Below are positions 27,129 through 38,759 of a DNA stretch of 64,000 bases, in pieces (within the stretch, counting starts at the first letter, position 1; each line of letters begins with the position of its first letter). A program made the translations under genes and the position numbers. The notes under the pieces were generated by a model. That model did not search any database. It saw nothing but the letters and a program-made list of their open reading frames with translations, and had not been told where the DNA came from. The stretch comes from Prasinococcaceae sp. CCMP 1430. Its lineage: Eukaryota > Plantae > Prasinodermophyta. The stretch spans positions 270,787-334,786 of the forward strand of contig RQSC01000004.1 of assembly GCA_013416795.1 (NCBI GenBank), given 5' to 3'.

Positions 27129-27698
27129 TCACGCGCCTGTGCGCTGGACTAGCCTCTGCGACTCCTCCCCGCGCAGCTCGTCGCCAAGGCTCGTGGCGGA
27201 GCGCACGCTCGTCGAGCGGGCGCTCGCTGCATCCCTCGTGTTGACGGTCGGTAGGGAGATGTCGCGCATCTCCCGCCGCGCGCAAAGCCACTCCCCCAAG
27301 ACTACCATCAGCCCGAAGGCCAGCCCCTCCGTGATCCACCATGCCGCCGAGGTGGGGAACCCGCCGAAGCCCACCGTCGCCATCAGGTGCAGGATGTAGA
27401 CAGTCGCGGTGAAGTCGAGGCACTTCTTCGCGCGCTCGACGACGGCCGTGAGGAGGAACGCGCCCACGAGCGCCGTGGCCGAGTGCGCGAGTATGGTCAT
27501 CCAGCCGATGAAGTGCTGCGTCGAGAGCGTGCGGTAGTCGAAGAAGTGGTGCAGCGTGACGCTGCCGTACGGCGCCACGAGCACCAGCAGCAGAGCGCCC
27601 AGCGTGAGGTAGTGCAGCGCCTGCATCGCGCCCATCTGCGCGACGATGAGCACCGGGTCCCACGCGTTTGCGCCGTAGAACTGCCCGCTGCCCGCCAT
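27129..27698 (-). CDS. SYS1: SYS1 integral Golgi membrane protein
   Basis: FYGANAWDPVLIVAQM, VVERAKKCLDFTATVYILHL, FPTSAAWW and VLGEWLCARREMRDI are SYS1 family motifs. Confidence 0.93.
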   Translation of the reverse strand: MAGSGQFYGANAWDPVLIVAQMGAMQALHYLTLGALLLVLVAPYGSVTLHHFFDYRTLSTQHFIGWMTILAHSATALVGAFLLTAVVERAKKCLDFTATVYILHLMATVGFGGFPTSAAWWITEGLAFGLMVVLGEWLCARREMRDISLPTVNTRDAASARSTSVRSATSLGDELRGEESQRLVQRTGA

Positions 27699-28192
27699 CG
27701 CCGCGCGCTCCCTCCCACCCTCTCGCCGCCTCCGCGCGCGCGCACGCGGCGCTGCCGCCGCCGCGCGCGCGCGCGCGCCTCTCTGTGGCCCGCCCGCGCC
27801 CTGCCGCAGCCGCACCCCGCCAGCGCTGTCCGGCAGATGCGCGCGCGAGCGGGGGAAGCGCAGCCGGGCAGGCGCGCGGCGCAGCAGGTTCGAACGCGGC
27901 CAGATCTGATTTTGTGTGTGATTTGGGAGCGCAAAAAAAAGTTCGGAGTGGCAGTGTGTGCGTACCAATGTTTTTGCCCCTCTGCGCCGTGGCGTCCGCC
28001 TCTGCCTTTCGCATCTTGTTTTTTTATGCGGGGTGTGTGCGTGTGCGGGGGGTTGTGGGTGTTGTGACTGTTGCGGAGTGCGCATGGCAGCGCGGGCAGG
28101 GTGGGCACCACAGCGCGCACGAGGGAAGAGGGCCAGGGGGGGAGGGGCGCCGGTGCCGCGCGGCGCTGGTGCCGCGCGCACCACGCGGCGCG

Positions 28193-31100
28193 ATGAGGGA
28201 GCGCGCCGCGCCCGGTGGCGGCGGCGGCGGCGGCGGCGGGCCAAAGCCGCTCAAGCTGCTGCGCTTCCGCGCGTCGGAGCGCAAGAGCGTGGACGCGTGC
28301 CTGCACCCGGTGCTGCCGTGGGTGGCGCTGTGCGACCAGGGCAATGGCGCGGTGCTGTGGGACTACGAGCAGAAGGAGACGCTCTACGAACTCAGCCCCG
28401 AAGGCGTCAGCAACGAGTGGTTCGTTGCGGCGGCCGTGCAGGCGAGCGCTGAGGCGCAGCCGTCATACACGGGGCAGCGCGACCACGCGGCCATGCGCCC
28501 GCGGACGGGGGGCAAGCTGGGCGCGGTGCGCTGCGTGAGGCTCTACGACGACGACGTGGCTGCGTGGCGGGAGTGGGAGACGGCGCGCGCCGCGCGCTCG
28601 GCGCCGCGAGATGCGTCCGCGCTCGGCGGATCTGCGCGCAGCGGGGCGGTGCGCGGGACGCAGTGGCTCGCGGTCGTGTGGGAGCAGGGGGCGACGTTCG
28701 TCGAGCTGAGCTCCGGCAAGGCGCGGCAGGTGTTTCGCTCTGAGCTCGAGGGCAAGCCTCAGATGTCGCGCCTCGAGATCATGGGTGTGCACTCCCACAC
28801 CATTGCGGCGATCGGCTGCAACGACGGCAGCATCCGCGTGCTCGCGCTCGGCAGCTTCAAGCCGGTGGCACGGCTCGCCGGGGGGCACCGCGGGGCAGTG
28901 CTGAGCATGCTGGTGCTTCCTAACTCGAGGCTGCTCACGGGTGGCGCAGACGGTTCGATCGCGCTCTGGGACCTCTCCATGGCCCGGCCGAGTGGCGACA
29001 CGGACCCCAAGATGGTGGTCCCTGCGCACAAGGACGGCGTGTCCTCGCTCGCGATCTACCCAGGGCCGATGATGCCGCGCGTCGTCACTGCCGGCGGTGA
29101 CAAGACGGTCGCGCTGTGGGACCTGGCGACCCTCCGCGAGCTGGCGAGGCAGCAGCCCAACGACAAGCTCCAGTGCATTCGCGCGGAGCCGTGGTTCCAC
29201 CCGCGCTTCCCTCGCGTCGACTGCGTGTTCGCGACGCGAAACGCGCAGATTGGCGTCGTTGCGCTGGAGAGCAAGGGGCAACCGCCCAGCATGCTGCTGG
29301 ACCTGGACCAGGTCATCCGGCCGCCTGGCGACAAGCCGCACGTCAAAGTGTACACGCTCGCGGTGCACCCGCTCCGGCCGTCCGTCGTGAGCATCGGCAC
29401 CAACGCTGGCCTCGTCATCATCGAAGTCGATCCCTCCTTCGCCCCCGCAGCTGCAGCTCTGCCCGTCGCGCCTGGCGGCGACGTGTCGCACCGCGCCGTG
29501 TACGCGCGCGGACGCAACCTGCTGTCGCTTGGATTCAGCGTCGCGGCAGGCGGCGGTGACGACGGTTTGCCAGGCGTCGAGCAGACGGAAGAGCGTGTTG
29601 CAGTGCTCCGCAGCGACGCCGCCTGCAGCCTGCACGCCCACCCGTCGGAAGAGCTGCTCGCGGTGTTCTGGCCAGGCGCGCAGTCCTACGCGGTGTACCG
29701 CACGAGCGACTGGCGCATCCTCGACGAGGGCCGTGCCTCCAGCCTGGGCTGGGATGCGGTGCATCCGCGCCTGGTCCTGCTCTCGGCACCCCCGCCGCAG
29801 CAGCAGCCTCCGCAGATGCGCGGCCGCGGCAAGAAGGCGAAGGAGGAGTACGCGATGGCGATGAAGGCGTACATCGCCGTGCAGGAGGCGTCGAGTACGG
29901 AGGCGAGGGTCCAGATCAAGGGCCTTGAGGGCGACAAGATGGAAATGTACAACGACGCGCTAGAGGTCGAGTCCGTCGAGAAGCGGCTGGGCGTCTTCGG
30001 CGGCGGCTTCTTCGGCGTGCGCGGCACGGAGCCCCCACAGCGGGCGGACGAGGACTCGTTGGAGGGCTACCGCTCGTCCAAGGCGGCCTCGGCGCGGCAG
30101 AGGGAGCGCGTGCAGCTCTTCCGGTGGGACACGCATACGGCCATCGGCCCCGCCATGCCTTGTCCGTCCAAGATCGTGTGGGACGTCGAGTGCGAGTTCG
30201 TGGCGTTTGTCTATCCGCACAGCGTGAGCTTGTTCCAGGCGCAACCCTCTTTCCACCTGCTGGGGTCCGTGAGCATCGAGGGGGTAGCGGACGCGCAGTG
30301 GTTCCGCTCGCAGCTCTTCATGCTGACACCGACGACCATTGAGTGTTGCTTCATCAGCGGCGGCGGGGCCGGGGGGGCCGGCGACGGGGGGGGCATGCGT
30401 GCGAGGGCAAAGAGGCCGTCCATGGAGTTTGTGACGCTGGCGACGCTGAGCCCGTGGGCCGGCGCCTCGATGGCGTGCCAACAGACAAACGCGACGCCTT
30501 CGCCGTCGGAGGTCGCCGCAGCCGCGCGACTGCCGCCTCCCGCGCGCCGCCCGGCCGGCGCGCTGGCGCTGCTGACAATCCGCGACGGCGCAGTGTGGCT
30601 GTGCGATGCCCTCGGCGTGGTGCACAGCGTGCCGTTGAAACACCCCGGCGTCCTCTGCCGCTGCCTGGCTGCGTACGGTGACGCCGGCGCCGCCGTGGCG
30701 TGCTCGGCGTCGCTGGACGCCGCGCACGCCGACGATTTGGCCACACACCTCGCCGTCGCGGGGGAGCCGCGTGCGGCTCTGGCGCTGAGAGGCGTGAGCC
30801 CTCGCGCGCGCGCCATCGTTGCCTCCGGTCGCGGCGCCGGGATGAGGCCGCTGCCACCAGCTGAGGCGCTGGCCATCGTCGAGCAAGCCGCCGTGGACAT
30901 TGATCCGCTGAGCGGCCGCGGGACGGGCTTCGTGACCGACCCCCTCGAGGCCCTCACGCTCGGCACGGCTGCCAAGGTCGGGCGGGCGGCTGCCGCGGGC
31001 ATCGCCGCCGTCGCGCATGACTACTTGCACGTCGCCGCGCACGCCCAGAGGCAGGGGCTGCGAGACGTGGCCGCCAAGGCCCTCAGTGCGCTCGCAGCGG

Positions 31101-31456
31101 CCGCGCCGATGCTCGAGGAGGACGCCCTGCACGCCACGCTCGCCAGGCTTGCGCAGGGTGGGCAGTGGGCCAAGCTGGAGGCGACGGCGGAGGCGCTGCT
31201 GCGCGCTGCGGACCTCGGCAGCGCCGCCGCGGACGCGCGCTCCACGTCGCTCGCGAGCAACGCGACCATGGCAGCGCTGCTGCTTGGGCGCAACGCCGGC
31301 GGCGACGCGCTCCTCTTCACGGCGCTCAAGAGGAGCGGCGCGCACGCCGAGGCAGTGGTTGCCGCGCGAGCGAGGGGGCTTGAGGACGACGGCGGCGCGC
31401 TCGAGGCCGCCAACGCGGCGCTGGAGAAGCACGGCGTGAGAATCGCCGACGCGTGA
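28193..31456 (+). CDS. TWD40-2: TPLATE/TSET complex WD40 subunit TWD40-2 (TTRAY2)
   Basis: LRFRASERKSVDACLHPVLPWVALCD...WDYEQKETLYEL...VRCVRLYDDDVAAW and KVYTLAVHPLRPSVVSIGTNAGLVIIEVDP match plant TWD40-2 as recalled. Multiple WD repeats are followed by a helical C-terminus. Confidence 0.85.
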   Translation: MRERAAPGGGGGGGGGPKPLKLLRFRASERKSVDACLHPVLPWVALCDQGNGAVLWDYEQKETLYELSPEGVSNEWFVAAAVQASAEAQPSYTGQRDHAAMRPRTGGKLGAVRCVRLYDDDVAAWREWETARAARSAPRDASALGGSARSGAVRGTQWLAVVWEQGATFVELSSGKARQVFRSELEGKPQMSRLEIMGVHSHTIAAIGCNDGSIRVLALGSFKPVARLAGGHRGAVLSMLVLPNSRLLTGGADGSIALWDLSMARPSGDTDPKMVVPAHKDGVSSLAIYPGPMMPRVVTAGGDKTVALWDLATLRELARQQPNDKLQCIRAEPWFHPRFPRVDCVFATRNAQIGVVALESKGQPPSMLLDLDQVIRPPGDKPHVKVYTLAVHPLRPSVVSIGTNAGLVIIEVDPSFAPAAAALPVAPGGDVSHRAVYARGRNLLSLGFSVAAGGGDDGLPGVEQTEERVAVLRSDAACSLHAHPSEELLAVFWPGAQSYAVYRTSDWRILDEGRASSLGWDAVHPRLVLLSAPPPQQQPPQMRGRGKKAKEEYAMAMKAYIAVQEASSTEARVQIKGLEGDKMEMYNDALEVESVEKRLGVFGGGFFGVRGTEPPQRADEDSLEGYRSSKAASARQRERVQLFRWDTHTAIGPAMPCPSKIVWDVECEFVAFVYPHSVSLFQAQPSFHLLGSVSIEGVADAQWFRSQLFMLTPTTIECCFISGGGAGGAGDGGGMRARAKRPSMEFVTLATLSPWAGASMACQQTNATPSPSEVAAAARLPPPARRPAGALALLTIRDGAVWLCDALGVVHSVPLKHPGVLCRCLAAYGDAGAAVACSASLDAAHADDLATHLAVAGEPRAALALRGVSPRARAIVASGRGAGMRPLPPAEALAIVEQAAVDIDPLSGRGTGFVTDPLEALTLGTAAKVGRAAAAGIAAVAHDYLHVAAHAQRQGLRDVAAKALSALAAAAPMLEEDALHATLARLAQGGQWAKLEATAEALLRAADLGSAAADARSTSLASNATMAALLLGRNAGGDALLFTALKRSGAHAEAVVAARARGLEDDGGALEAANAALEKHGVRIADA

Positions 31457-31544: not shown

Positions 31545-32432
31545 TTACTCCTCGCCGTACGCGGGACAGACGCATTGCTTCAAGTACTTTCCCTCGCTCG
31601 CGGCATCGAGGCTGAAGCGGGCCAGGTCGGCGAAAGGCAACGAAGTGCCAGGTTTGCCGGCGCACATTGGCTTGTCAGTCGGGGCCTTGTCGCTGTGGTA
31701 GAGGCGCCCCGGGCGCGTGACAATCCACTGCAGGTCGCTGCACTCGCTCGAGAGGTACTCGATGACGCTGGTGTTATCCTTCACCATGGGTCCTATGCCG
31801 AACACCGGCACCAAGACGGTCGCCTGCGTGTGGGTTGGCGCCGCGCGGGTGCGCCGGCGCGAGAAGGGGGTCCGCCGCGCTGACAGTCAGCGGTGGAGAC
31901 CAAGGGGGAGTAATCGCGCTTTGGCACATTCGCCGGGCGACGCCCGGGTCGTCGCCCCCAGCGACGCTCGCCTGTCCAAAGCGGGCGGCCAGCTGCTACT
32001 CACCATGCAGCTGGTCATGCCACTGAGCTGCTCTCCCGGAGGGGGTGAGAACGCCCCCGCCTGGAAAAGCACTCGCTCGACGCCCTTGGCTCGCATCGCC
32101 GCCGTCAGCTTTTTCACGAACGCAAGCATCATGTCCTTGGGCTGGTAGGCCTTCGCGTTCATGGGACCGCCGGTGTGGCACAGAACGGCGTCCACCACCA
32201 CGCCCTCCTCCTCGCCCTCACCGCCGCCCAGTACCAGCCCCGCTGCGACATCCTCCGCGTTGGCGAGGTCCCCCTTGAGAATGGTGAGGTTCTCATGCGT
32301 GCCGAGCAGGTTCTTGCCCTTCACGGGGTCGCGCACGCACGCCGCGTTCACGCGCAGGCCGCGCTGGATCGCCCACTTCACCACCTCCTTCCCGGTCCTG
32401 CCGGTTGCGCCGTAGACGGCGACGGAGCGCAA
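31545..32432 (-). CDS. NAD(P)-binding Rossmann-fold oxidoreductase (flavin reductase / BLVRB-like); 2 exons (32432-32004, 31823-31545); apparent TTG start
   Basis: VAVYGATGRTG, LKGDL, VDAVL, LQWIVTRPGRL, DLARFSLD. Phase-0 intron 31824-32003 (GTGAGT...CGCAG). Confidence 0.82.
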
Positions 32433-33220
32433 GGGGTCGGAAGACCCCGCCGCCCGCTGCGCCGCGCACCAAGCGTGGGCTGTCGGCGAAAGCCGCTGCC
32501 TGGGCCTCGAAACGCCTGGAGCAGATCGGCTCGGCGGCGGAGCAGTTCGGGACGCTGCTCATCCAAGTCCTGGCGAGCCCGGCCGAGTTGGTCGGCGGGG
32601 GGCTGGTGAAGGGGACGCGGGGGGCAAGGAGGAGGCTCGGGAAGGCGCTTAATAAGAATTTCGGCGGGATGTCGCAGCACGTGGTCCTGGCAGGCACGGG
32701 CCTGGCCCTCCTTCAGATCAACAAGATGATCGTGCGAAAGCAGAACCGCGCGCTCATCCGCAGCCCGAAGGAGATCAAGGCGGCGCGTGAGGCGCGTGCG
32801 GAGGCGGCGGCCATCGAGAAGTTGCTCGCCGGAGAGCTCGGGAAGGGCCGCATCGAGCGCGTCAAAGGCGCCACGGCGTACAAGGGCTCGTCAGCCGCGC
32901 AAAGCCGTGCCGAGGCGGCTGCTCGCGGCCGCGCGGGCAGTGGCAGGGCGCGAGCGCGGGCTGCGAAGCTCCCACAGCTGTCGGTGGCCGAGAAGGCCGA
33001 CGGCCAGACCGTGTCGACGCACAAGGCGAAGGGAGTCCGCGTCGAGGAGGAGGAACTCGCGCAGGCGCCCAAGTCAGAAACGGCAAAGGGGGCGGGAAAG
33101 GCCGAGGCGGCGGACAAGAGCAAAGGCAAGGGCAAGGCTGAGGCGGCAGACGGGCCCAAGGCCAAGGCCAAGGCCAAGGACGACGCCAAGCCTCCCCCGC
33201 GCATGCCAGTGTTCGGATAA
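32405..33220 (+). CDS. Hypothetical protein with one hydrophobic segment and a Lys/Ala-rich tail; start unresolved
   Basis: Coding-like G/C-ending codons from about 32460. First ATG is at 32669 (MSQHVVLAGTGLALLQI). No family recognised. Confidence 0.5.
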   Translation: MRRRRRRSARGRKTPPPAAPRTKRGLSAKAAAWASKRLEQIGSAAEQFGTLLIQVLASPAELVGGGLVKGTRGARRRLGKALNKNFGGMSQHVVLAGTGLALLQINKMIVRKQNRALIRSPKEIKAAREARAEAAAIEKLLAGELGKGRIERVKGATAYKGSSAAQSRAEAAARGRAGSGRARARAAKLPQLSVAEKADGQTVSTHKAKGVRVEEEELAQAPKSETAKGAGKAEAADKSKGKGKAEAADGPKAKAKAKDDAKPPPRMPVFG

Positions 33221-33286
33221 AACCGCGCGGTCGTCGTTCTGACGTGCGTGCCTTAACGTAATGCATGCGGGTTGGTTGGATTCGAA

Positions 33287-36127
33287 TTACATGCTCGAAA
33301 CGTCTGCCGAGCCGGCGGCCGCATCGCTGGCGTCGGCGGCCAATTGAGCTTTGAGGCGGGCGCGCAGGCGCGCGCGCGGGTCCTCGGCCAGTGGCGTCGA
33401 TATGGGCTGCGAGCTGACGTTCTTTTCGCCCTCATTGCCCAGCGCCCTGCTGTAGTTGGTCATCGACCCCTGGCGCTTTGCCTCCAGGTAGTTGAATTTG
33501 CGTGGAGGAGTGTGACTACCCGAGTCGCCCTCGAGCGCGGGGACGCCACCTACCTCGGCGGCGTGTTTGGCCGACATCCCCTCCGCCTGGCCCGCCGCCA
33601 GCGCCCAGCGGGCCGTGTTGCGACCCTGTGCGCTCATCGCTTCCGCGTAGTTGACGCCGCTGCCGGCACGCCTGAAGCGGGCGTCGCTGCCGTTGATGGG
33701 CGCATCCATCGATGCCGTGCCAGGGGTAAATTTGACATGGCGCCCGGCGGCCGCGTCGTTAGCGCCAGCCTCGGCGTCGGCCTCCTCCTTTTCCTCTGCA
33801 ATCGCGCGCTCAATCGCTTCGAACGATGCGCGACGGCCTTGAGGGCCCATAACGTCCCCGTAAAACACGCCAGACCCTGCCCGCTCGAGCGACGAACGAC
33901 GTGGCTCATCAGTGCCTGGCTCGGCAGGCACAAAGGCCACGTGGCGCTCGCCCTTCTCGGCGGTCGTGCCGCCAGGTTCGGACACCAGCGAGTCCTGATG
34001 CTGCGCTTTCTGCTCCCTAGCCAACAATCTGATGGCCTCATCCGCTGCTGCGTCCTCCTGGGCCTGGCCCGTCGCCAGCGCCCACTTTGCCCGGCGGTTG
34101 CCCTGCTTGCTCATCGCCGCGCTGTAGTTCACGAAGGAGCCCTTCTTGGAGGCCTTGACGACGGGTTCGGCCGAGCCATCGGAGGCAGTGCCGGGCGCGA
34201 AGTTGACGTGGCGGTCTGCGCCACCGGCAGGCGAGTCCTCGCCCGGGACCTCGGCCCCATCCTCCTCCGCCTGGCCCGCCGCCAGCGCCCAGCGGGCCGT
34301 GTTGCGACCCTGCGCGCTCATCGCTTCCGCGTAGTTGACGCCGCTGCCGGCACGCCTGAAGCGGGCGTCGCTGCCGTTGATGGGCGCATCCATCGACGCC
34401 GCCTCGACGGTGAACTCGACGTGGCGGCCACCACCAGAGTTGCTCGGCTCGCCTGTGACCTTTGCCCCATCCTCTTCAGCCTGACCCGCTGCCAGAGCCC
34501 AGCGGGCCGTGTTTTGGCCGTGCGTGCTCATCGCTGCGGCGTAGTTGACGCCGCTGCCGGCACGCTTCAAATTGCTCCCTCCTTGCGGCGAGGACGTGTC
34601 AGGAGTAAAGGACACGTGGTGGCCGCCGTCACTCTCTCCGCGCTCTTCTGCAGCGCGTTCATTGCCTTGCAATCGGTCGGAGGATGAAGGTGAGGCTTGT
34701 GCGGGTCCCGGAGCCATCACGCTCGCGAACGCCTGCTCAAGATTGCGCAGAGCTGCACCGGCTGCGCGAATGTGTTCAATCGCAGCGCCCGCCTGCTGCA
34801 ACTTCTCCGCGAGGTAGGGCGACAGGTCGGCGGGACCTGCTGTAGGCGTGGCCCGTGCCATTTCGGCTGAGGCGGGAGTGCCAGGGGGCGTGGTCGCGCT
34901 CGGCGCAAAGCTTATTGGGGCAACCGCCTCGGGCTCGTCATGCGCACTCGACAGGCGCTCGTCCAAGCGGAGCAGGCGGAGGCCGTTCCGGATAGCCTCC
35001 GCGCGCCGGAATTCCCTGCGCACCGCTGGCGAAGCGGCTGTGCCGGCAGGAGGTGGAGCGCAGCAGCCGATGAGTGCATCCAACACGTCGCTGGGCTTGG
35101 CGGGTCCCTCACCGCCCTCGCCTGTTGCCTCAAGCGAGCGCACCACATCGAGTGTGTCCGAGAGGGCCGCGTGCGCCTTGTCGAGCTCCCCCGCGTCAAA
35201 GGTCTGCGTAGACCACATCTCCGCGTGCCATCGGGCGATCCAGCGCAGCCGGCGGTATGAGTGTTTGGTGGCATCGGACGACCTGCTCCCAGAGGCCGAG
35301 TGCATCGCCGCCCGTGCTGCGATGGCCAAGAGCGCGCTCCGCACGTGCCCCCCGCTGCTCTGGCTACCGGAGCCCGTGAAGGCCGCTACGAGTCGCGCCT
35401 CATCGTGCGCGCTCGGCGGTTTGAAAGGTGCGGTGGATGCACGCTCCGCCACGCGCGCGGCAGCTCGCGCTAGCGGCAACCATGCGAGCGCCCCCGCAGG
35501 CTGGCCTCCAGCGCTCGACCGTGCCGCATGGGCGTCTGGGCGAGTGAGCGCGGCCTTCGCCGCAGAGGCAACCTCTGCCAGCCCCCCTGACGAAAAGAGC
35601 AACGGCAAGCGGGCCTCCAGCCCTATGAGGTCCTCCACCGCGCGGGCGAAGGACGCCACATTGCCGCCGAGGCGCGCAGCGCATCCCACTGCGACGGCGA
35701 CCGCGCCAACCTCCTTTCGCCACCGCGTTCCGTCCAGTGGGCATCCGTGCCAAGCCCTCACGGCCCACGCCAGCAGCGCCTCCGCCCCCTGCTGCGCCTG
35801 ACCATGCTCGCCGTCCCCGGCAGCGAGGGCACTCAGCACCGCCCTCGCTCGCTGCGCCGGCGTCTGATCCGCGCCCACCCCGACCGCAGCGGCCGCGTGA
35901 GCGTGCCCGTCCGCGCCACTCGCCGCGGTCGCGCGCGCGAGGCAGCGCAGCAGCAGTTCGGAAAACGCCAGGTATGCCATCGCGGCCGCGCCCTTTGACC
36001 CCGCCGGCGCGAGCGCGGCCGCGAGCGCCGCTGCACGCTCGCGCTCGATGGGTATGAGTCGGTACCCCTGCTTGTGAATGAGAACGACAAGTTCGTGCGC
36101 GCTGAGCTGGCGCGGCCGCGCCAGCAC
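33287..36127 (-). CDS. Uncharacterised protein: helical N-terminal half plus five ~65-90 aa C-terminal repeats with RVxF-like motifs
   Basis: 946-codon ORF with clear internal protein repeats. The track start is GTG; the first ATG is at 35980. Confidence 0.75.
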   Translation of the reverse strand: MLARPRQLSAHELVVLIHKQGYRLIPIERERAAALAAALAPAGSKGAAAMAYLAFSELLLRCLARATAASGADGHAHAAAAVGVGADQTPAQRARAVLSALAAGDGEHGQAQQGAEALLAWAVRAWHGCPLDGTRWRKEVGAVAVAVGCAARLGGNVASFARAVEDLIGLEARLPLLFSSGGLAEVASAAKAALTRPDAHAARSSAGGQPAGALAWLPLARAAARVAERASTAPFKPPSAHDEARLVAAFTGSGSQSSGGHVRSALLAIAARAAMHSASGSRSSDATKHSYRRLRWIARWHAEMWSTQTFDAGELDKAHAALSDTLDVVRSLEATGEGGEGPAKPSDVLDALIGCCAPPPAGTAASPAVRREFRRAEAIRNGLRLLRLDERLSSAHDEPEAVAPISFAPSATTPPGTPASAEMARATPTAGPADLSPYLAEKLQQAGAAIEHIRAAGAALRNLEQAFASVMAPGPAQASPSSSDRLQGNERAAEERGESDGGHHVSFTPDTSSPQGGSNLKRAGSGVNYAAAMSTHGQNTARWALAAGQAEEDGAKVTGEPSNSGGGRHVEFTVEAASMDAPINGSDARFRRAGSGVNYAEAMSAQGRNTARWALAAGQAEEDGAEVPGEDSPAGGADRHVNFAPGTASDGSAEPVVKASKKGSFVNYSAAMSKQGNRRAKWALATGQAQEDAAADEAIRLLAREQKAQHQDSLVSEPGGTTAEKGERHVAFVPAEPGTDEPRRSSLERAGSGVFYGDVMGPQGRRASFEAIERAIAEEKEEADAEAGANDAAAGRHVKFTPGTASMDAPINGSDARFRRAGSGVNYAEAMSAQGRNTARWALAAGQAEGMSAKHAAEVGGVPALEGDSGSHTPPRKFNYLEAKRQGSMTNYSRALGNEGEKNVSSQPISTPLAEDPRARLRARLKAQLAADASDAAAGSADVSSM
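33440..34630 (-). repeat. Intragenic tandem repeat array (5 full units and 1 partial): [RH]HVxF...(R/K)xxGSxVNYxxAMSxQGxxxARWALAxGQAEE
   Basis: Units begin at HHVSF 34621, RHVEF 34426, RHVNF 34213, RHVAF 33946 and RHVKF 33742. Segments 33581-33712 and 34265-34396 are identical over 132 bp except for one base. Confidence 0.9.
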
Positions 36128-36785
36128 CGGCGTCGGCTCCGCGAAAACGCGCGGGAGCGGCGCGCGTCCCGCGCGCGTCCGCGTCCCGACCCGGCGCCAC
36201 GCAGCCTCCGTCGATCATCCGCGCCGCGCGGAAAAATCGCGCCGCGCGCCGAATTACAACAAATTACCCTGTCTGGACGTGGCTGTGTATGCCAAACCTC
36301 AGCGCGGCGCGCGTCGCTGCGCGCCAATACCAGCTGGGCTACTCCGCCCAGTACGCGCCTTCACGCACGTGTAACCACACACACTGAGGTCCTATCACAC
36401 GACGCTGTGGTCGTGTGCAGCTGCGAGCGACGCGCACGCGTCGCGAGCAGCAGAACTGGCACGTCGCCGCGAATGTCTCCCCCCTTCGGCCCTGATAATT
36501 TCTGCCCCTGCAGAATTTAGGGCTCCCTCGAGATCCACGTGGGTTCCCTTCGCGGCTCCGAAATGGCGTTTGATACGATGTAACCTCTATAACTTCGCTA
36601 TGACCAAAACGGCGCGCGCCAAAATGCGCCCCGCAGCGCGAAATCGGGCTCCCGCGAGATCTCCACGGGAGTGCGCGATATCGGATCGAGCGCCCCGTCG
36701 GAATCAAAACGCGCCGCCGCGCGGCGCGCGCGCCCCGCCGCTGCCAGCGGCGTGGCGCACCGACCCGAGCGATGGGCAGTGATGA

Positions 36786-38759
36786 ATGAGGGGTGACGAG
36801 GGGGTGATGACAGGGCTGGGGCGGAGAAGAGCGCGCGCGCGCTCTTTTTTCCGCCCCGGCGGTTCGCGCGGCGGGATCGTTTCCTGCGTCGCCCTCCGCG
36901 GTTTTTCGCGGGGGCGCGCGCGCGCGCGGCGCGCGCGGGGCGTGCGCGAATTGCGCGCCACACACGCGCCACGGCGCGCGCGCGGCACGCGCGGCGGCCG
37001 GCCACCGAAGGGGGGTGGGAGGGAGGACGAAGAAGGCGCGGGGGGAGGCGCTCGCACGCTCGAGCGCGCCGTCGAACGCGCGCTCGCGCGGATTCGGCAG
37101 GGGCAGAGCGCCGCGAGACCCGGCGCGTGCGCCGGGCCCTCAATGTGCTGGGGCGCGGGGAGCAGACGGGTGCAGTCGCAGCTACAGCAGGGGGCGGGCG
37201 CTGGCGAGGCGAGCTGGGAGGCGCTCGCGCGATCGTCGGCAGTGGACCGGGCGAGTCAGGGCGAGGGCGCGAGGCGGGAAGGAAGCCCGCCGACGCCGCA
37301 GGAGTTGGGCGAGCTGCAGGGGCAGCAGCGGCAGGTGGCGCCGTGCTGGTCGTCGCGCCTCGATAAGCTGGACCTGCCGAGCCTGACGTGCCTCGACGGT
37401 AGCCTAGGCGCGCTGGGCACTGTTGGCAGCTGGGACACCACGTTCGCGGGAGGGGGGCAACCCCGCGCCGCCGCCGCCGCCGTCGCCGCTGCGGCGGCCC
37501 AGGGGTCGCCGCACTCGTTCAAGTCTGTCGTGACGGTCGCGCCAGTGCTTGCCTCGCCCGCCCTTGCGGGCGTACCCGCACCGTCGACGGAAGCACCCCT
37601 TCTTCTGCGCCCGACCACGAGGTCTACCACAGGCAGGCTCAAGATGGGCAGCGGCGGCGGCGCCGCCGCCAAGCAGAGCAAGGCCACCAAGACGACGACG
37701 AAGAAGATCAACGGCGGCGGCAAGAAGAAGAAGGGCTCGTCGAAGTTGTCGCTGGCGATCCCCAAGAAGGGCGGCGCCTCCGGCAAGCAGACGCGCCCTC
37801 ACCCCAACCAGTACACCGCCAGGCCGCGACCCAAGCGCCCTGAAGGGGCGGCGCCCATCGCGTGCCAGGTTGTCGGCTGCCCGCACACCGACCTGAGCAG
37901 CCTCCGCGAGTACTATCAACGCTACAAGGTCTGCGAGGCGCATTCCAAGCAGTCGGTTGTCATCTTCCCCGACGGCGAGGCGCAACGCTTTTGCCAGCGC
38001 TGCGGGCACTTCCATTCGCTCGACGCCTTCGAAGGTTCGCGCCGCAGCTGTCAGGCCAAACTCGAGGAGCACAACCGCCGCCGCCGCCAGCCCAACTCCC
38101 CGCCGCGCCCGGCCAAGTCGGAGGCCGCCGCGAGGGTGCACGAGTCGAAGCGCTCGCGTAGCGCCAGTGCCGAGAAGGATTGGCAGGACGCGGCTGCCGC
38201 GTTCGTGACCGAGCACCACCGCGCAAGCCCGGCGTCGCCGCTCGCGGCGCTGCGCGGCGACGATGACTTGAGTGACGTCGACACCGATATGACGGCAACC
38301 AACAGCGTCGAGACCGCGCCGGACGACGCTCCGATGACACCCGCGCTGCAGATGATGTCCGCAGTGCCAGTGGGAACTCCGATGGCGCCCCTCAGGACTC
38401 ACCTGGCGCTCCAGACGCGCTCATCACCGCAGCCGCAGCCGCAGTCGCAGCCGCAGCCGCAACCGCAGCCGCAGCCGCACGGGCGGCCTGACTCGGCGCC
38501 GCCAGACGAGCTCGGCCCTCTCCCCCTGCCGCGTCTCGGCGGCATGGGCGTGTCGAGCATCGACCTGCTCGGCCTCGGAGAGCACTATATCGGCGGGTCG
38601 CTGCAAACAATCGATGGAGGCGCTTCTGAGGACAGCAGCGATGACAGCGTGATCTCGTTCGGCGACGAGGATGTGGCCGAGCTCTACCAGATGGTCGCTA
38701 ACGACGAGGCAAACGACAAGCACGTCCGTCTGGAGGCCCTCAGCGGCAACACCTTCTGA
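36786..38759 (+). CDS. SBP-box (SQUAMOSA promoter-binding) transcription factor; start uncertain (ATG 36786, 36807 or 37143)
   Basis: SBP domain at about 37863-38091: CQVVGC...YYQRYKVCEAH...QRFCQRCGHFHSLDAFEGSRRSCQAKLEEHNRRRR, with two zinc sites and the basic NLS. QP-rich tract and acidic C-terminus follow. Confidence 0.92.
   Translation: MRGDEGVMTGLGRRRARARSFFRPGGSRGGIVSCVALRGFSRGRARARRARGVRELRATHAPRRARGTRGGRPPKGGGREDEEGAGGGARTLERAVERALARIRQGQSAARPGACAGPSMCWGAGSRRVQSQLQQGAGAGEASWEALARSSAVDRASQGEGARREGSPPTPQELGELQGQQRQVAPCWSSRLDKLDLPSLTCLDGSLGALGTVGSWDTTFAGGGQPRAAAAAVAAAAAQGSPHSFKSVVTVAPVLASPALAGVPAPSTEAPLLLRPTTRSTTGRLKMGSGGGAAAKQSKATKTTTKKINGGGKKKKGSSKLSLAIPKKGGASGKQTRPHPNQYTARPRPKRPEGAAPIACQVVGCPHTDLSSLREYYQRYKVCEAHSKQSVVIFPDGEAQRFCQRCGHFHSLDAFEGSRRSCQAKLEEHNRRRRQPNSPPRPAKSEAAARVHESKRSRSASAEKDWQDAAAAFVTEHHRASPASPLAALRGDDDLSDVDTDMTATNSVETAPDDAPMTPALQMMSAVPVGTPMAPLRTHLALQTRSSPQPQPQSQPQPQPQPQPHGRPDSAPPDELGPLPLPRLGGMGVSSIDLLGLGEHYIGGSLQTIDGGASEDSSDDSVISFGDEDVAELYQMVANDEANDKHVRLEALSGNTF

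Follow-up and report, generated by a model that had tools for sequence, protein, structure and literature searches.

PP1 owes its specificity to hundreds of partners that carry short motifs, very few of which are known from green algae. In the literature the RVxF docking motif is given in a stricter form as [KRL][KRSTAMVHNQ][VI]{FIMYDP}[FW], and its N-terminal flank in PP1 binders is usually basic. Inhibitor-1 and DARPP-32 are animal inhibitors of PP1 that PKA activates. In inhibitor-1, 23 residues separate the motif R8KIQF12 from Thr35, and both elements are required for inhibition of PP1 (PMC5758809). In inhibitor-3, residues 27-68 join a canonical RVxF motif to further contacts (PMC10066265).

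Here we analyse a gene of the marine green picoalga Prasinococcaceae sp. CCMP 1430, located in a window of 64,000 nucleotides, of which the product carries a comparable arrangement in tandem. As in inhibitor-1 and DARPP-32, an RVxF-type motif, a basic run and a candidate phospho-acceptor about 20 residues on (18-23 in the algal protein) lie in a chain that in the alga is predicted to be disordered. RVxF-type PP1 partners such as inhibitor-3, where an element that engages the active site lies downstream of the RVxF, offer a second parallel: the algal [RK]-x-[VI]-x-[FW] motif is short, its surroundings are predicted to be disordered, and another conserved element follows a few tens of residues on. 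There are also differences. The acceptor is Ser, whereas it is Thr in inhibitor-1 and DARPP-32; one to four basic residues take the place of a run of four Arg; and the module occurs five or six times instead of once. A conserved helix after the site, a large N-terminal domain and the green algal lineage further separate the two. From generic RVxF proteins the algal protein, in which docking is putative, differs by its tandem copies, an invariant His before the Val and a non-basic N-terminal flank. The inhibitor-1/DARPP-32 model in Pfam-A gave no match to the whole protein (E ≤ 1) or to nine individual units (E ≤ 10), and judged by sequence the protein is not a member of that family.

A conserved and transcribed minus-strand gene

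The ORF listing contains a stop-free minus-strand frame of 946 codons plus stop (Table 1), of which the GTG 'start' is an artefact of bacterial-style ORF calling. An orthologue, encoded by an ORF on the metagenome contig L001, is 47% identical over its full length (ORF residues 28-930). Differences between the two genes fall mostly on codon position 3, with dN/dS values of 0.05-0.46 in the minus frame (0.22 at residues 98-400 and 0.05 at residues 436-470). In the minus frame of the ORF, GC3 lies above both GC1 and GC2, which is not so in the antisense frame.

Long overlapping stop-free frames are plentiful across the window, and on the Tara scaffold L002 a gene caller chose an ORF of the opposite strand. 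Both observations would suit a chance stop-free frame in DNA of 68-70% GC, or a true gene in the form of the antisense 471-codon ORF at 33272-34687 (+). However, protein-level conservation with L001 over the full length, the third-position bias of the divergence, the dN/dS of 0.05-0.46 and the GC3 pattern of the minus frame effectively refute these two readings, which we consider extremely improbable.

Transcription of the locus, on which the sequence-only reading had staked its proposal in advance, was found: contigs from RNA libraries span 33307-36004, and labelled marine metatranscriptome contigs match the gene at 95-99%. The minus strand, which that reading had taken as coding, is also the one in whose frame purifying selection acts. 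In the two culture-derived RNA runs coverage is absent from 36005 (X1) and from 35839 (X2), the upstream intergenic stretch 36168-36555 has zero coverage in both, and the depths of neighbouring genes lie more than 30-fold apart. The first 64 nt of L002, sought upstream in the window as a first exon, gave low-complexity GC matches only. The ORF is a real, expressed protein-coding gene, and we regard it as virtually certain that gene and repeat are real and under constraint.

Tandem modules in the C-terminal half

The C-terminal half comprises five units of 65, 71, 89, 68 and 68 amino acids and a partial sixth. Each full unit follows the plan [RH]-H-V-x-F, [KR]-x-G-S 18-23 residues further on, V-[NF]-Y-x3-M-x3-G, and a helix. 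Five tandem units of about 65-90 residues, each with its own H-V-x-F motif and G-S site, and a truncated sixth had been described from the bare sequence; a motif scan located all of them, with unit lengths of 65-89 residues.

Table 1. Positions of the gene and its features in the window.
Feature	Position	Strand	Details
Whole coding frame	33287..36127	(-)	conserved part from ~36046 (ORF residue 28) to the stop at 33289-33287
Conserved N-terminal region	34703..35836	(-)	residues 98-475; predicted all-helical
Unit 1 (A type, degenerate)	34430..34624	(-)	HHVSF (residue 503) 34607-34621; KRAGS, Ser525 34553-34555
Unit 2 (A type)	34217..34429	(-)	RHVEF (residue 568) 34412-34426; FRRAGS, Ser595 34343-34345
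Unit 2 helix	within 34217..34429	(-)	TARWALAAGQAEED
Unit 3 (A type, longest linker)	33950..34216	(-)	RHVNF (residue 639) 34199-34213; SKKGS, Ser664 34136-34138; DNA repeat D9
Unit 4 (B type)	33746..33949	(-)	RHVAF (residue 728) 33932-33946; PRRSSLERAGS, Ser752 33872-33874; GRRASF
Unit 5 (A type)	33542..33745	(-)	RHVKF (residue 796) 33728-33742; FRRAGS, Ser823 33659-33661
Partial unit 6 (C type, without H-V-x-F)	33290..33541	(-)	KRQGSMTNY (residue 884), Ser888 33464-33466
C-terminal helix after unit 6 motif	within 33290..33541	(-)	conserved; TPLAEDPRARLRARLK

The distance from Phe to Ser in units 1-5 is 18, 23, 21, 20 and 23 residues. An Arg or Lys is present at -3 from the Ser in 11 of 11 units, with Tyr at +4 and, in several units, Phe or Leu at -5. 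The unit 1 motif reads HQVSF in a wild variant on L002. The unit 4 subtype is orthologously conserved, its basic-GS segment being 93% identical to that of the L001 B unit (RHIGF ... PRRASLERAGSGVFYGDAMGPEGRRASF), and its RR[SA]SL and RRASF sites are present in both species. Unit 6 has a counterpart in L001 that reads SRQGSLTHY ... TPLADDPRDRLKSRLK.

Duplication of the modules and selection on their motifs

Homology among the units is far above chance. When the window was searched with unit 2 (tblastn), the other four units were retrieved at E values of 9e-30, 6e-22, 1e-06 and 9e-05, and the DNA repeat families D1-D3 agree with this homology. Units 2 and 5 share 93% of amino acids over 54 residues and 87-89% of nucleotides (DNA repeat D3, 193 nt at 87%); by this similarity, unit 5 is a recent duplicate of unit 2. 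Elsewhere in the window, tblastn detected no paralogues of the units or of the N-terminal domain. The two species differ in copy number, as do two metagenome assemblies, and a word-indexed search with the repeat half recovered the L001 orthologue in two copy-number forms. The tandem modules expand, contract and homogenise through duplication.

Against this turnover, the motifs are held. Identity between the window gene and L001 is 0.75 in RHVxF, 0.75 from the basic-GS site to the Met and 0.59 in the helix, versus 0.21 and 0.13 in the two linkers. The residues H, F, G, S, V, Y, M and G are invariant in nine units of two subtypes. Their codons vary synonymously: three units use AGC for the invariant Ser and the rest TCN, Arg appears as CGN and AGG, and Phe as TTT and TTC. 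The earlier statement that motifs are kept while linkers diverge is borne out by these figures. In the sole orthologue the motifs are RHVQF (three times), RHIGF and a GHVHF stub. H-[VI]-x-F is thus retained; conservation of its VxF residues in orthologues had been made a test. Purifying selection holds R-H-[VI]-x-F, [KR]-x-G-S-x-V-[NF]-Y-x3-M and the W/F-containing helix in each module.

Distribution and predicted structure

Pfam-A gave no match to the whole protein at E ≤ 1, and the nine units searched singly at E ≤ 10 gave only two single-unit matches at chance level. A PDB profile search with the nine-unit alignment (E ≤ 10) returned three chance matches (helix composition, fusion-protein linkers). 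An ESM Atlas feature search with the repeat half and the N-terminal region gave nothing usable (top score 0.76), and for the N-terminal region (residues 98-475) neither Pfam nor the ESM Atlas held a match. The sequence-only reading had recognised no described repeat family; the Pfam and PDB profile searches likewise yielded no meaningful match, and no family of unrelated function. An exhaustive phmmer search (HMMER) that covered 1.84 billion representatives brought up a single orthologue and a single fragment, and two scans of JGI metagenome contigs, with patterns of the N-terminal domain and of the repeat, produced pattern matches and no relatives. As to synteny, the large WD40 neighbour on L003 was rejected as an orthologue of the window gene at 27668-31456. 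Across these collections the family is undescribed, and the gene is limited to the picoalga, including wild variants nearly identical to it, and to a single uncultured relative.

The N-terminal region shows long runs of invariant columns in an alignment of three sequences, and AlphaFold2 predicts helices there with pLDDT below 60. The model of the whole protein (3-row alignment) has a mean pLDDT of 35.6, with the highest values (~72) at residues 920-930. A single unit, unit 2 (9-row alignment), was modelled with a mean pLDDT of 59.2; it contains a helix at unit residues 39-59 (pLDDT about 70-76), and its RHVEF segment is without regular structure. The H-V-x-F segments in general are given no regular structure, at low confidence (pLDDT 22-64). 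The models also contain two helices, a short one at YAEA and one of 21 residues that follows the conserved Gly. The N-terminal region is predicted to be helical and the C-terminal half largely disordered. At these mean confidences no fold is established, both models being too weak for fold searches.

Candidate ligands of the modules

Four of the five window motifs fit both the loose pattern [RK]-x(0,1)-[VI]-{P}-[FW] and the stricter one, with HHVSF falling outside, which is the count given by the sequence-only reading. By inspection the same fraction applies to L001 (4/5), where GHVHF fails. An RVxF motif with a basophilic candidate acceptor some 23 residues on, as in inhibitor-1, is matched in spacing by units 1-5, HHVSF being the exception as to RVxF fit. 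In 2000 shuffles of the C-terminal half the mean number of RVxF matches was 0.19 and the maximum 3, versus 4 observed. For background, the remaining long stop-free frames of the window, 31,734 aa in all, give 0.69 matches per 1000 aa with the loose pattern and 0.32 with the strict one; at least one match occurs in 16 of 60 of these frames. Because the pattern is this common, a chance match in the founder unit would not be rare; multiplicity follows from duplication, and since all five copies descend from one founder they do not amount to five independent hits.

The x position of the motif is occupied by S, E, N, A, K, Q or G, a freedom that would be expected upon docking to PP1, where this residue faces solvent. 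Against PP1 stand the residues preceding H-V-x-F, which are Gly, Asp or Glu in place of the usual basic ones, the misfit of HHVSF (HQVSF in a wild variant) and GHVHF, a Ser where inhibitor-1 and DARPP-32 have Thr, and the lack of a Pfam match. R-R-x-S-hydrophobic is the classical PKA consensus, and RR[SA]SL and RRASF in unit 4 match it. Neither the PP1 groove nor a kinase consensus demands the invariant His before the Val, or the Gly(-1), Val(+2) and Asn/Phe(+3) that are likewise invariant around the Ser, which hints at another or additional ligand, or at a small folded element.

In a rival reading, the modules may be structural elements, or may dock something else than PP1: the N-terminal helical domain of the same protein, a membrane or a further protein. 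R-H-[VI]-x-F would then be a generic beta-strand or hydrophobic anchor, G-S-x-V-N-Y-x3-M and the W-helix a small helical hairpin, and the Ser could be a structural helix cap and no phosphosite. The invariance of His, Gly(-1), Val(+2), Tyr(+4), Met(+8) and Gly(+12), which exceeds what PP1 and kinase motifs require, is consistent with this, as are the two modelled helices and the non-basic flank of RHVxF. However, the low model confidence establishes no such fold, a structural Ser leaves the [RK] at -3 in all 11 units unexplained, and no candidate partner can be named. We consider a non-PP1 or structural role possible, at less than an even chance.

Tau repeats share the core K-x-G-S-x-x-N-[IL]; MARK kinases are AMPK-related, and AMPK/SnRK1-type kinases suit hydrophobic residues at -5 and +4. 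The microtubule-binding repeats of tau contain KXGS motifs that are MARK sites (PMC11447834). The algal units resemble those of tau, MAP2 and MAP4 in being tandem and lying in a region, here predicted, of disorder, with a K/R-x-G-S site that fits AMPK-related kinases: [KR]-x-G-S-x-x-N-[Y] recalls the tau core, every unit has a hydrophobic residue at +4 from the Ser, and several have another at -5. By analogy they could bind the cytoskeleton and be released from microtubules upon phosphorylation of K-x-G-S by MARK. We consider this very unlikely. The tau/MAP repeat family of Pfam matched neither the whole protein nor any unit (units to E ≤ 10), and the PDB profile search gave no tau or MAP chain. 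PGGG is absent from every unit, and the likeness comes down to four or five residues. The units are also 65-89 residues long compared with about 31 in tau/MAP repeats, and carry the extra H-V-x-F element.

Binding of 14-3-3 at the G-S sites was set aside because the canonical 14-3-3 motif disfavours Gly at -1. That motif would accommodate the RRASL and RRASF sites that unit 4 carries. Calcineurin docking through PxIxIT was set aside as well, there being no Pro at position 1; to our knowledge calcineurin is lacking in the green lineage.

Discussion

We tentatively read the tail as a disordered array of docking sites that would be multivalent and tunable by phosphorylation, and for which PP1 is the foremost candidate ligand; we find this reading possible and on balance doubtful. 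What suggests recruitment of PP1 is the set of short-motif matches. R-H-[VI]-x-F would enter the RVxF groove of the PP1 catalytic subunit in the form of a beta-strand, and a kinase of the AGC, CDPK or SnRK1 type would phosphorylate the invariant Ser 18-23 residues downstream. The phospho-Ser segment could then reach the region of the PP1 active site, either as a substrate docked in cis or as a phospho-dependent inhibitor like inhibitor-1 and DARPP-32.

By analogy with the latter, each module might be an independently evolved switch, in which an RVxF anchor is paired with a phospho-Ser that is under kinase control and fills the PP1 active site. Kinases would in that case activate the protein as a multivalent sponge or inhibitor of PP1, its valency set by copy number, which we regard as unlikely. 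We know of no kinase-activated PP1 switch of this design outside animals, or in tandem.

The locus carries an orphan gene that is well documented, and its proposed mechanism is a hypothesis that can be tested. Even without PP1, it offers a clean case of selected short linear motifs in a fast-turnover repeat array of a lineage-restricted gene. If the PP1 reading is true, one protein could hold, or inhibit, several molecules of the phosphatase at a time. Its tandem modules, each pairing a dock with a phosphosite, would offer a compact example from nature of kinase/phosphatase integration tuned by valency, and a convergent counterpart to the animal inhibitor-1/DARPP-32 switch.

Gene structure and expression

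The repeat ORF is a real gene on the minus strand, stop-free over 946 codons. A word-indexed search found two orthologous proteins from ENA metagenome assemblies, P0001 (828 aa) and P0002 (756 aa), on contigs L001 and L003 (~9.4 kb each, 66-72% GC). The stop-free frame of L001 (2249-5026) aligns with window residues 28-930 at 47% identity (E 5e-178). Differences in the minus-frame codon alignment fall mostly at third positions (73, 61 and 159 at codon positions 1, 2 and 3 in residues 98-400), and dN/dS (NG86) is ~0.28 for residues 28-97, 0.22 for 98-400, 0.05 for 436-470 and 0.46 for the C-terminal half. With an orthologue and this selection signal at hand, we give virtually no credence to the ORF being an artefact. 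The minus-frame signal also rules out as a gene an antisense frame that overlaps the repeat array, and marks it as a by-product of composition. Gene calls on the Tara metagenome scaffold L002 show how high GC and repeats mislead automatic annotation: the caller picked an opposite-strand ORF (244-1233, minus) and left all but the final 96 codons of the true gene unannotated.

The stretch 33307-36004 is matched without mismatch by contigs from two small, culture-derived runs of 'organism A'. In these runs, coverage is absent from 36005 (X1) or 35839 (X2), the upstream intergenic stretch 36168-36555 has zero coverage in both, and depth differs >30-fold between the repeat gene and neighbouring genes. 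The gap and the depth differences indicate that these runs are RNA, not DNA. Two labelled marine metatranscriptomes also contain contigs of 200-660 nt on the gene (95-99% identity). The strand is assigned from the selection signal, since the RNA contigs carry no strand information; taken together, the data bear out transcription with coding in the minus frame, as the sequence-only reading presupposed.

An exhaustive phmmer search of 1.84 billion cluster representatives yielded two hits only: P0002 (E 1e-177) and a 96-aa fragment, P0003. The fragment is located on L002, a scaffold that matches the window at 98-99% identity, with an N-gap in the repeat array. Pattern scans of JGI metagenome contigs gave zero relatives, and no paralogue was found elsewhere in the window. 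Neither half of the protein was recognised in Pfam, PDB or ESM Atlas, in agreement with the earlier view that the repeat matches no described family.

The window has 64-73% GC throughout and carries plant and green-algal markers, such as the neighbouring SBP-domain gene, which has high depth in both culture-derived runs. Protein conservation with L001 begins at ORF residue 28 (~36046); the ORF has no in-frame ATG upstream, and L001 has Ala in place of its first Met (residue 50, 35978-35980). In this 5' region (window 36040-36230, minus; L001 2249-2330), an acceptor-like pyrimidine tract with CAG|GG lies just upstream in both species (window ~36068; L001 ~2311, with a CTGAC branch-like site), which suggests a first exon further upstream. 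Both L002 (1-64; 99% identical) and a metatranscriptome contig diverge from the window exactly at 36045/36046, which may be a strain polymorphism or an assembly difference. On the other side, the stop of the convergent Lys/Ala/Glu-rich ORF, which has no Pfam match, lies only 66 nt from the repeat-gene stop. One RNA-library contig (32601-33360) spans the 3' ends of both genes, whose 3' UTRs probably overlap. The NmrA-like ORF has just 181 codons, whereas the profiles are 184 and 298 long, and the match is confined to their first halves; this gene therefore probably continues in another exon.

Coordinates of the repeat gene and adjacent features in the window
Feature	Position	Strand	Remarks
Repeat gene	33287-36127	-	
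Antisense frame, 471 codons (rejected)	33272-34687	+	
SBP-domain (SQUAMOSA promoter binding) transcription factor gene, divergent neighbour	36786-38759	+	PF03110, E 3e-26
Lys/Ala/Glu-rich ORF, 271 codons, convergent	32405-33220	+	36-nt tandem repeat 33094-33179
NmrA-like / NAD(P)H-binding ORF, short	31887-32432	-	PF13460, E 4e-13

Organisation and conservation of the repeat array

The C-terminal half contains HHVSF, RHVEF, RHVNF, RHVAF and RHVKF, one per unit, and in all five units 18-23 residues separate the Phe of H-V-x-F from the Ser of [KR]-x-G-S. Downstream follows V-[NF]-Y-x3-M-[SG]-x2-G, with ARWALAAGQAE-like helices in four units; a partial sixth unit reads KRQGSMTNY. The units (65, 71, 89, 68 and 68 aa) are homologous far beyond chance (tblastn self-matches, E 9e-30 to 9e-05), and DNA repeat families of 92-193 nt occur within the array, which Tandem Repeats Finder does not report because linker lengths differ. 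The five units and partial sixth had been described accurately.

An alignment of all nine full units from the two species revealed three subtypes: A (window units 1, 2, 3 and 5), with R-H-V-x-F, basic-G-S and W-helix; B (window unit 4), with PRR[SA]SLERAGSGVFYGD.MGP.GRRASF; and C (window partial unit 6), without H-V-x-F. The unit order is A-A-A-B-A-C in the window versus stub-A-B-A-A-C in L001. True orthology between the species holds for the B and C units, with 93% identity in the basic-GS segment of B. A units are more alike within than between species, with 0.84-1.00 identity within L001 in every segment bar the second linker, and 93% between window units 2 and 5. Subtype order and within-species likeness indicate that the array turns over by duplication and homogenisation; the 'five motifs' are therefore not five independent observations. 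Exactly one A unit, of 72 aa, separates P0001 from P0002 (L001 3728-4546 versus L003), which could reflect copy-number variation or assembly collapse. The N-gap of L002 sits at the same kind of place.

Between species, A units retain identities of 0.75 in RHVxF, 0.75 in basic-GS..M and 0.59 in the helix, whereas the two linkers retain 0.21 and 0.13. His, Phe, Gly-Ser, Val(+2), Tyr(+4), Met(+8), Gly(+12) and two helix Ala are invariant in 9/9 units, and [RK] occupies position -3 of the Ser in 11/11, C units included. The Ser codon is AGC in units 1, 2 and 5, and TCC, TCT or TCG in units 3, 4, 6 and all of L001. Because a change from one of these families to the other requires two nucleotide substitutions, the Ser has been kept over time, beyond what recent copying would explain. 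Other conserved positions also vary synonymously (Arg CGC, CGG, CGA or AGG; Phe TTT or TTC; His CAC or CAT). These comparisons confirm that motifs are held while linkers diverge, and indicate that the motifs are under selection.

Possible functions of the repeat units

The alignment of only three sequences gave a full-length AlphaFold2 model that cannot be relied on (mean pLDDT 35.6). A single-unit model from nine aligned units (mean pLDDT 59.2) has one moderately confident helix past the conserved Gly and leaves RHVEF without regular structure. The models establish no fold and are compatible with a disordered tail bearing short motifs and a helix.

The Ser context, with [RK] at -3, Phe/Leu at -5 in several units and Tyr at +4 in all, suits basophilic kinases of the AGC, CDPK or SnRK1/AMPK type. 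Unit 4 also has RR[SA]SL and RRASF, textbook PKA-type sites kept in both species. In addition, [KR]-x-G-S-x-x-N-Y resembles the KXGS motifs of tau microtubule-binding repeats, which are MARK sites (PMC11447834). However, the likeness is limited to those few residues, the units are twice as long and have no PGGG, and there is zero profile match in Pfam or PDB; we consider a tau-like cytoskeletal role very improbable.

The sequence-only reading proposed a multivalent PP1 scaffold or phospho-switch array. R-H-[VI]-x-F conforms to (R/K)(R/K)(V/I)X(F/W), given as the docking pattern for PP1 in PMC5758809, and four of five window units fit the looser [RK]-x(0,1)-[VI]-{P}-[FW]. By inspection, 4/5 L001 motifs fit the RVxF pattern, and H-[VI]-x-F is conserved in the orthologue. 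The residue at x is free to vary, in keeping with a side chain exposed to solvent. PP1 inhibition by inhibitor-1 needs two subdomains, R8KIQF12 and phospho-Thr35, 23 residues apart (PMC5758809), a distance and order that the units match, although their acceptor is Ser. In inhibitor-3, too, an RVxF motif is accompanied by a second contact close by (PMC10066265), as the units combine an RVxF-type motif with a nearby second element. By sequence, the repeat protein belongs to neither family (Pfam), and the likeness is an argument of the 'works like' kind only.

The PP1 reading is weakened by the frequency of pattern matches: the other long stop-free frames of the window, 31,734 aa in all, contain 0.69 (loose) and 0.32 (strict) matches per 1000 aa, and 16 of these 60 frames have at least one. 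Further weaknesses are the residues preceding R-H-V-x-F (Gly, Asp or Glu, none basic), the degenerate unit 1 (HHVSF in the window, HQVSF in a wild variant), the Ser acceptor, and the invariant His, Gly(-1), Val(+2) and Asn/Phe(+3), which go beyond PP1 or kinase needs and speak for some further constraint, or another one altogether. The scaffold interpretation stands in part, upheld in orthologue conservation, transcription with minus-frame coding, and the lack of a match to any known unrelated family. A partner other than PP1, or a small folded element, is a possibility of slightly greater weight than PP1 docking, and a lesser share of our expectation goes to other functions. An inhibitor-1-like multivalent PP1 switch specifically, argued by analogy, would be unlikely; judged by its motifs, the tail may dock PP1, which we regard as possible but less likely than not.
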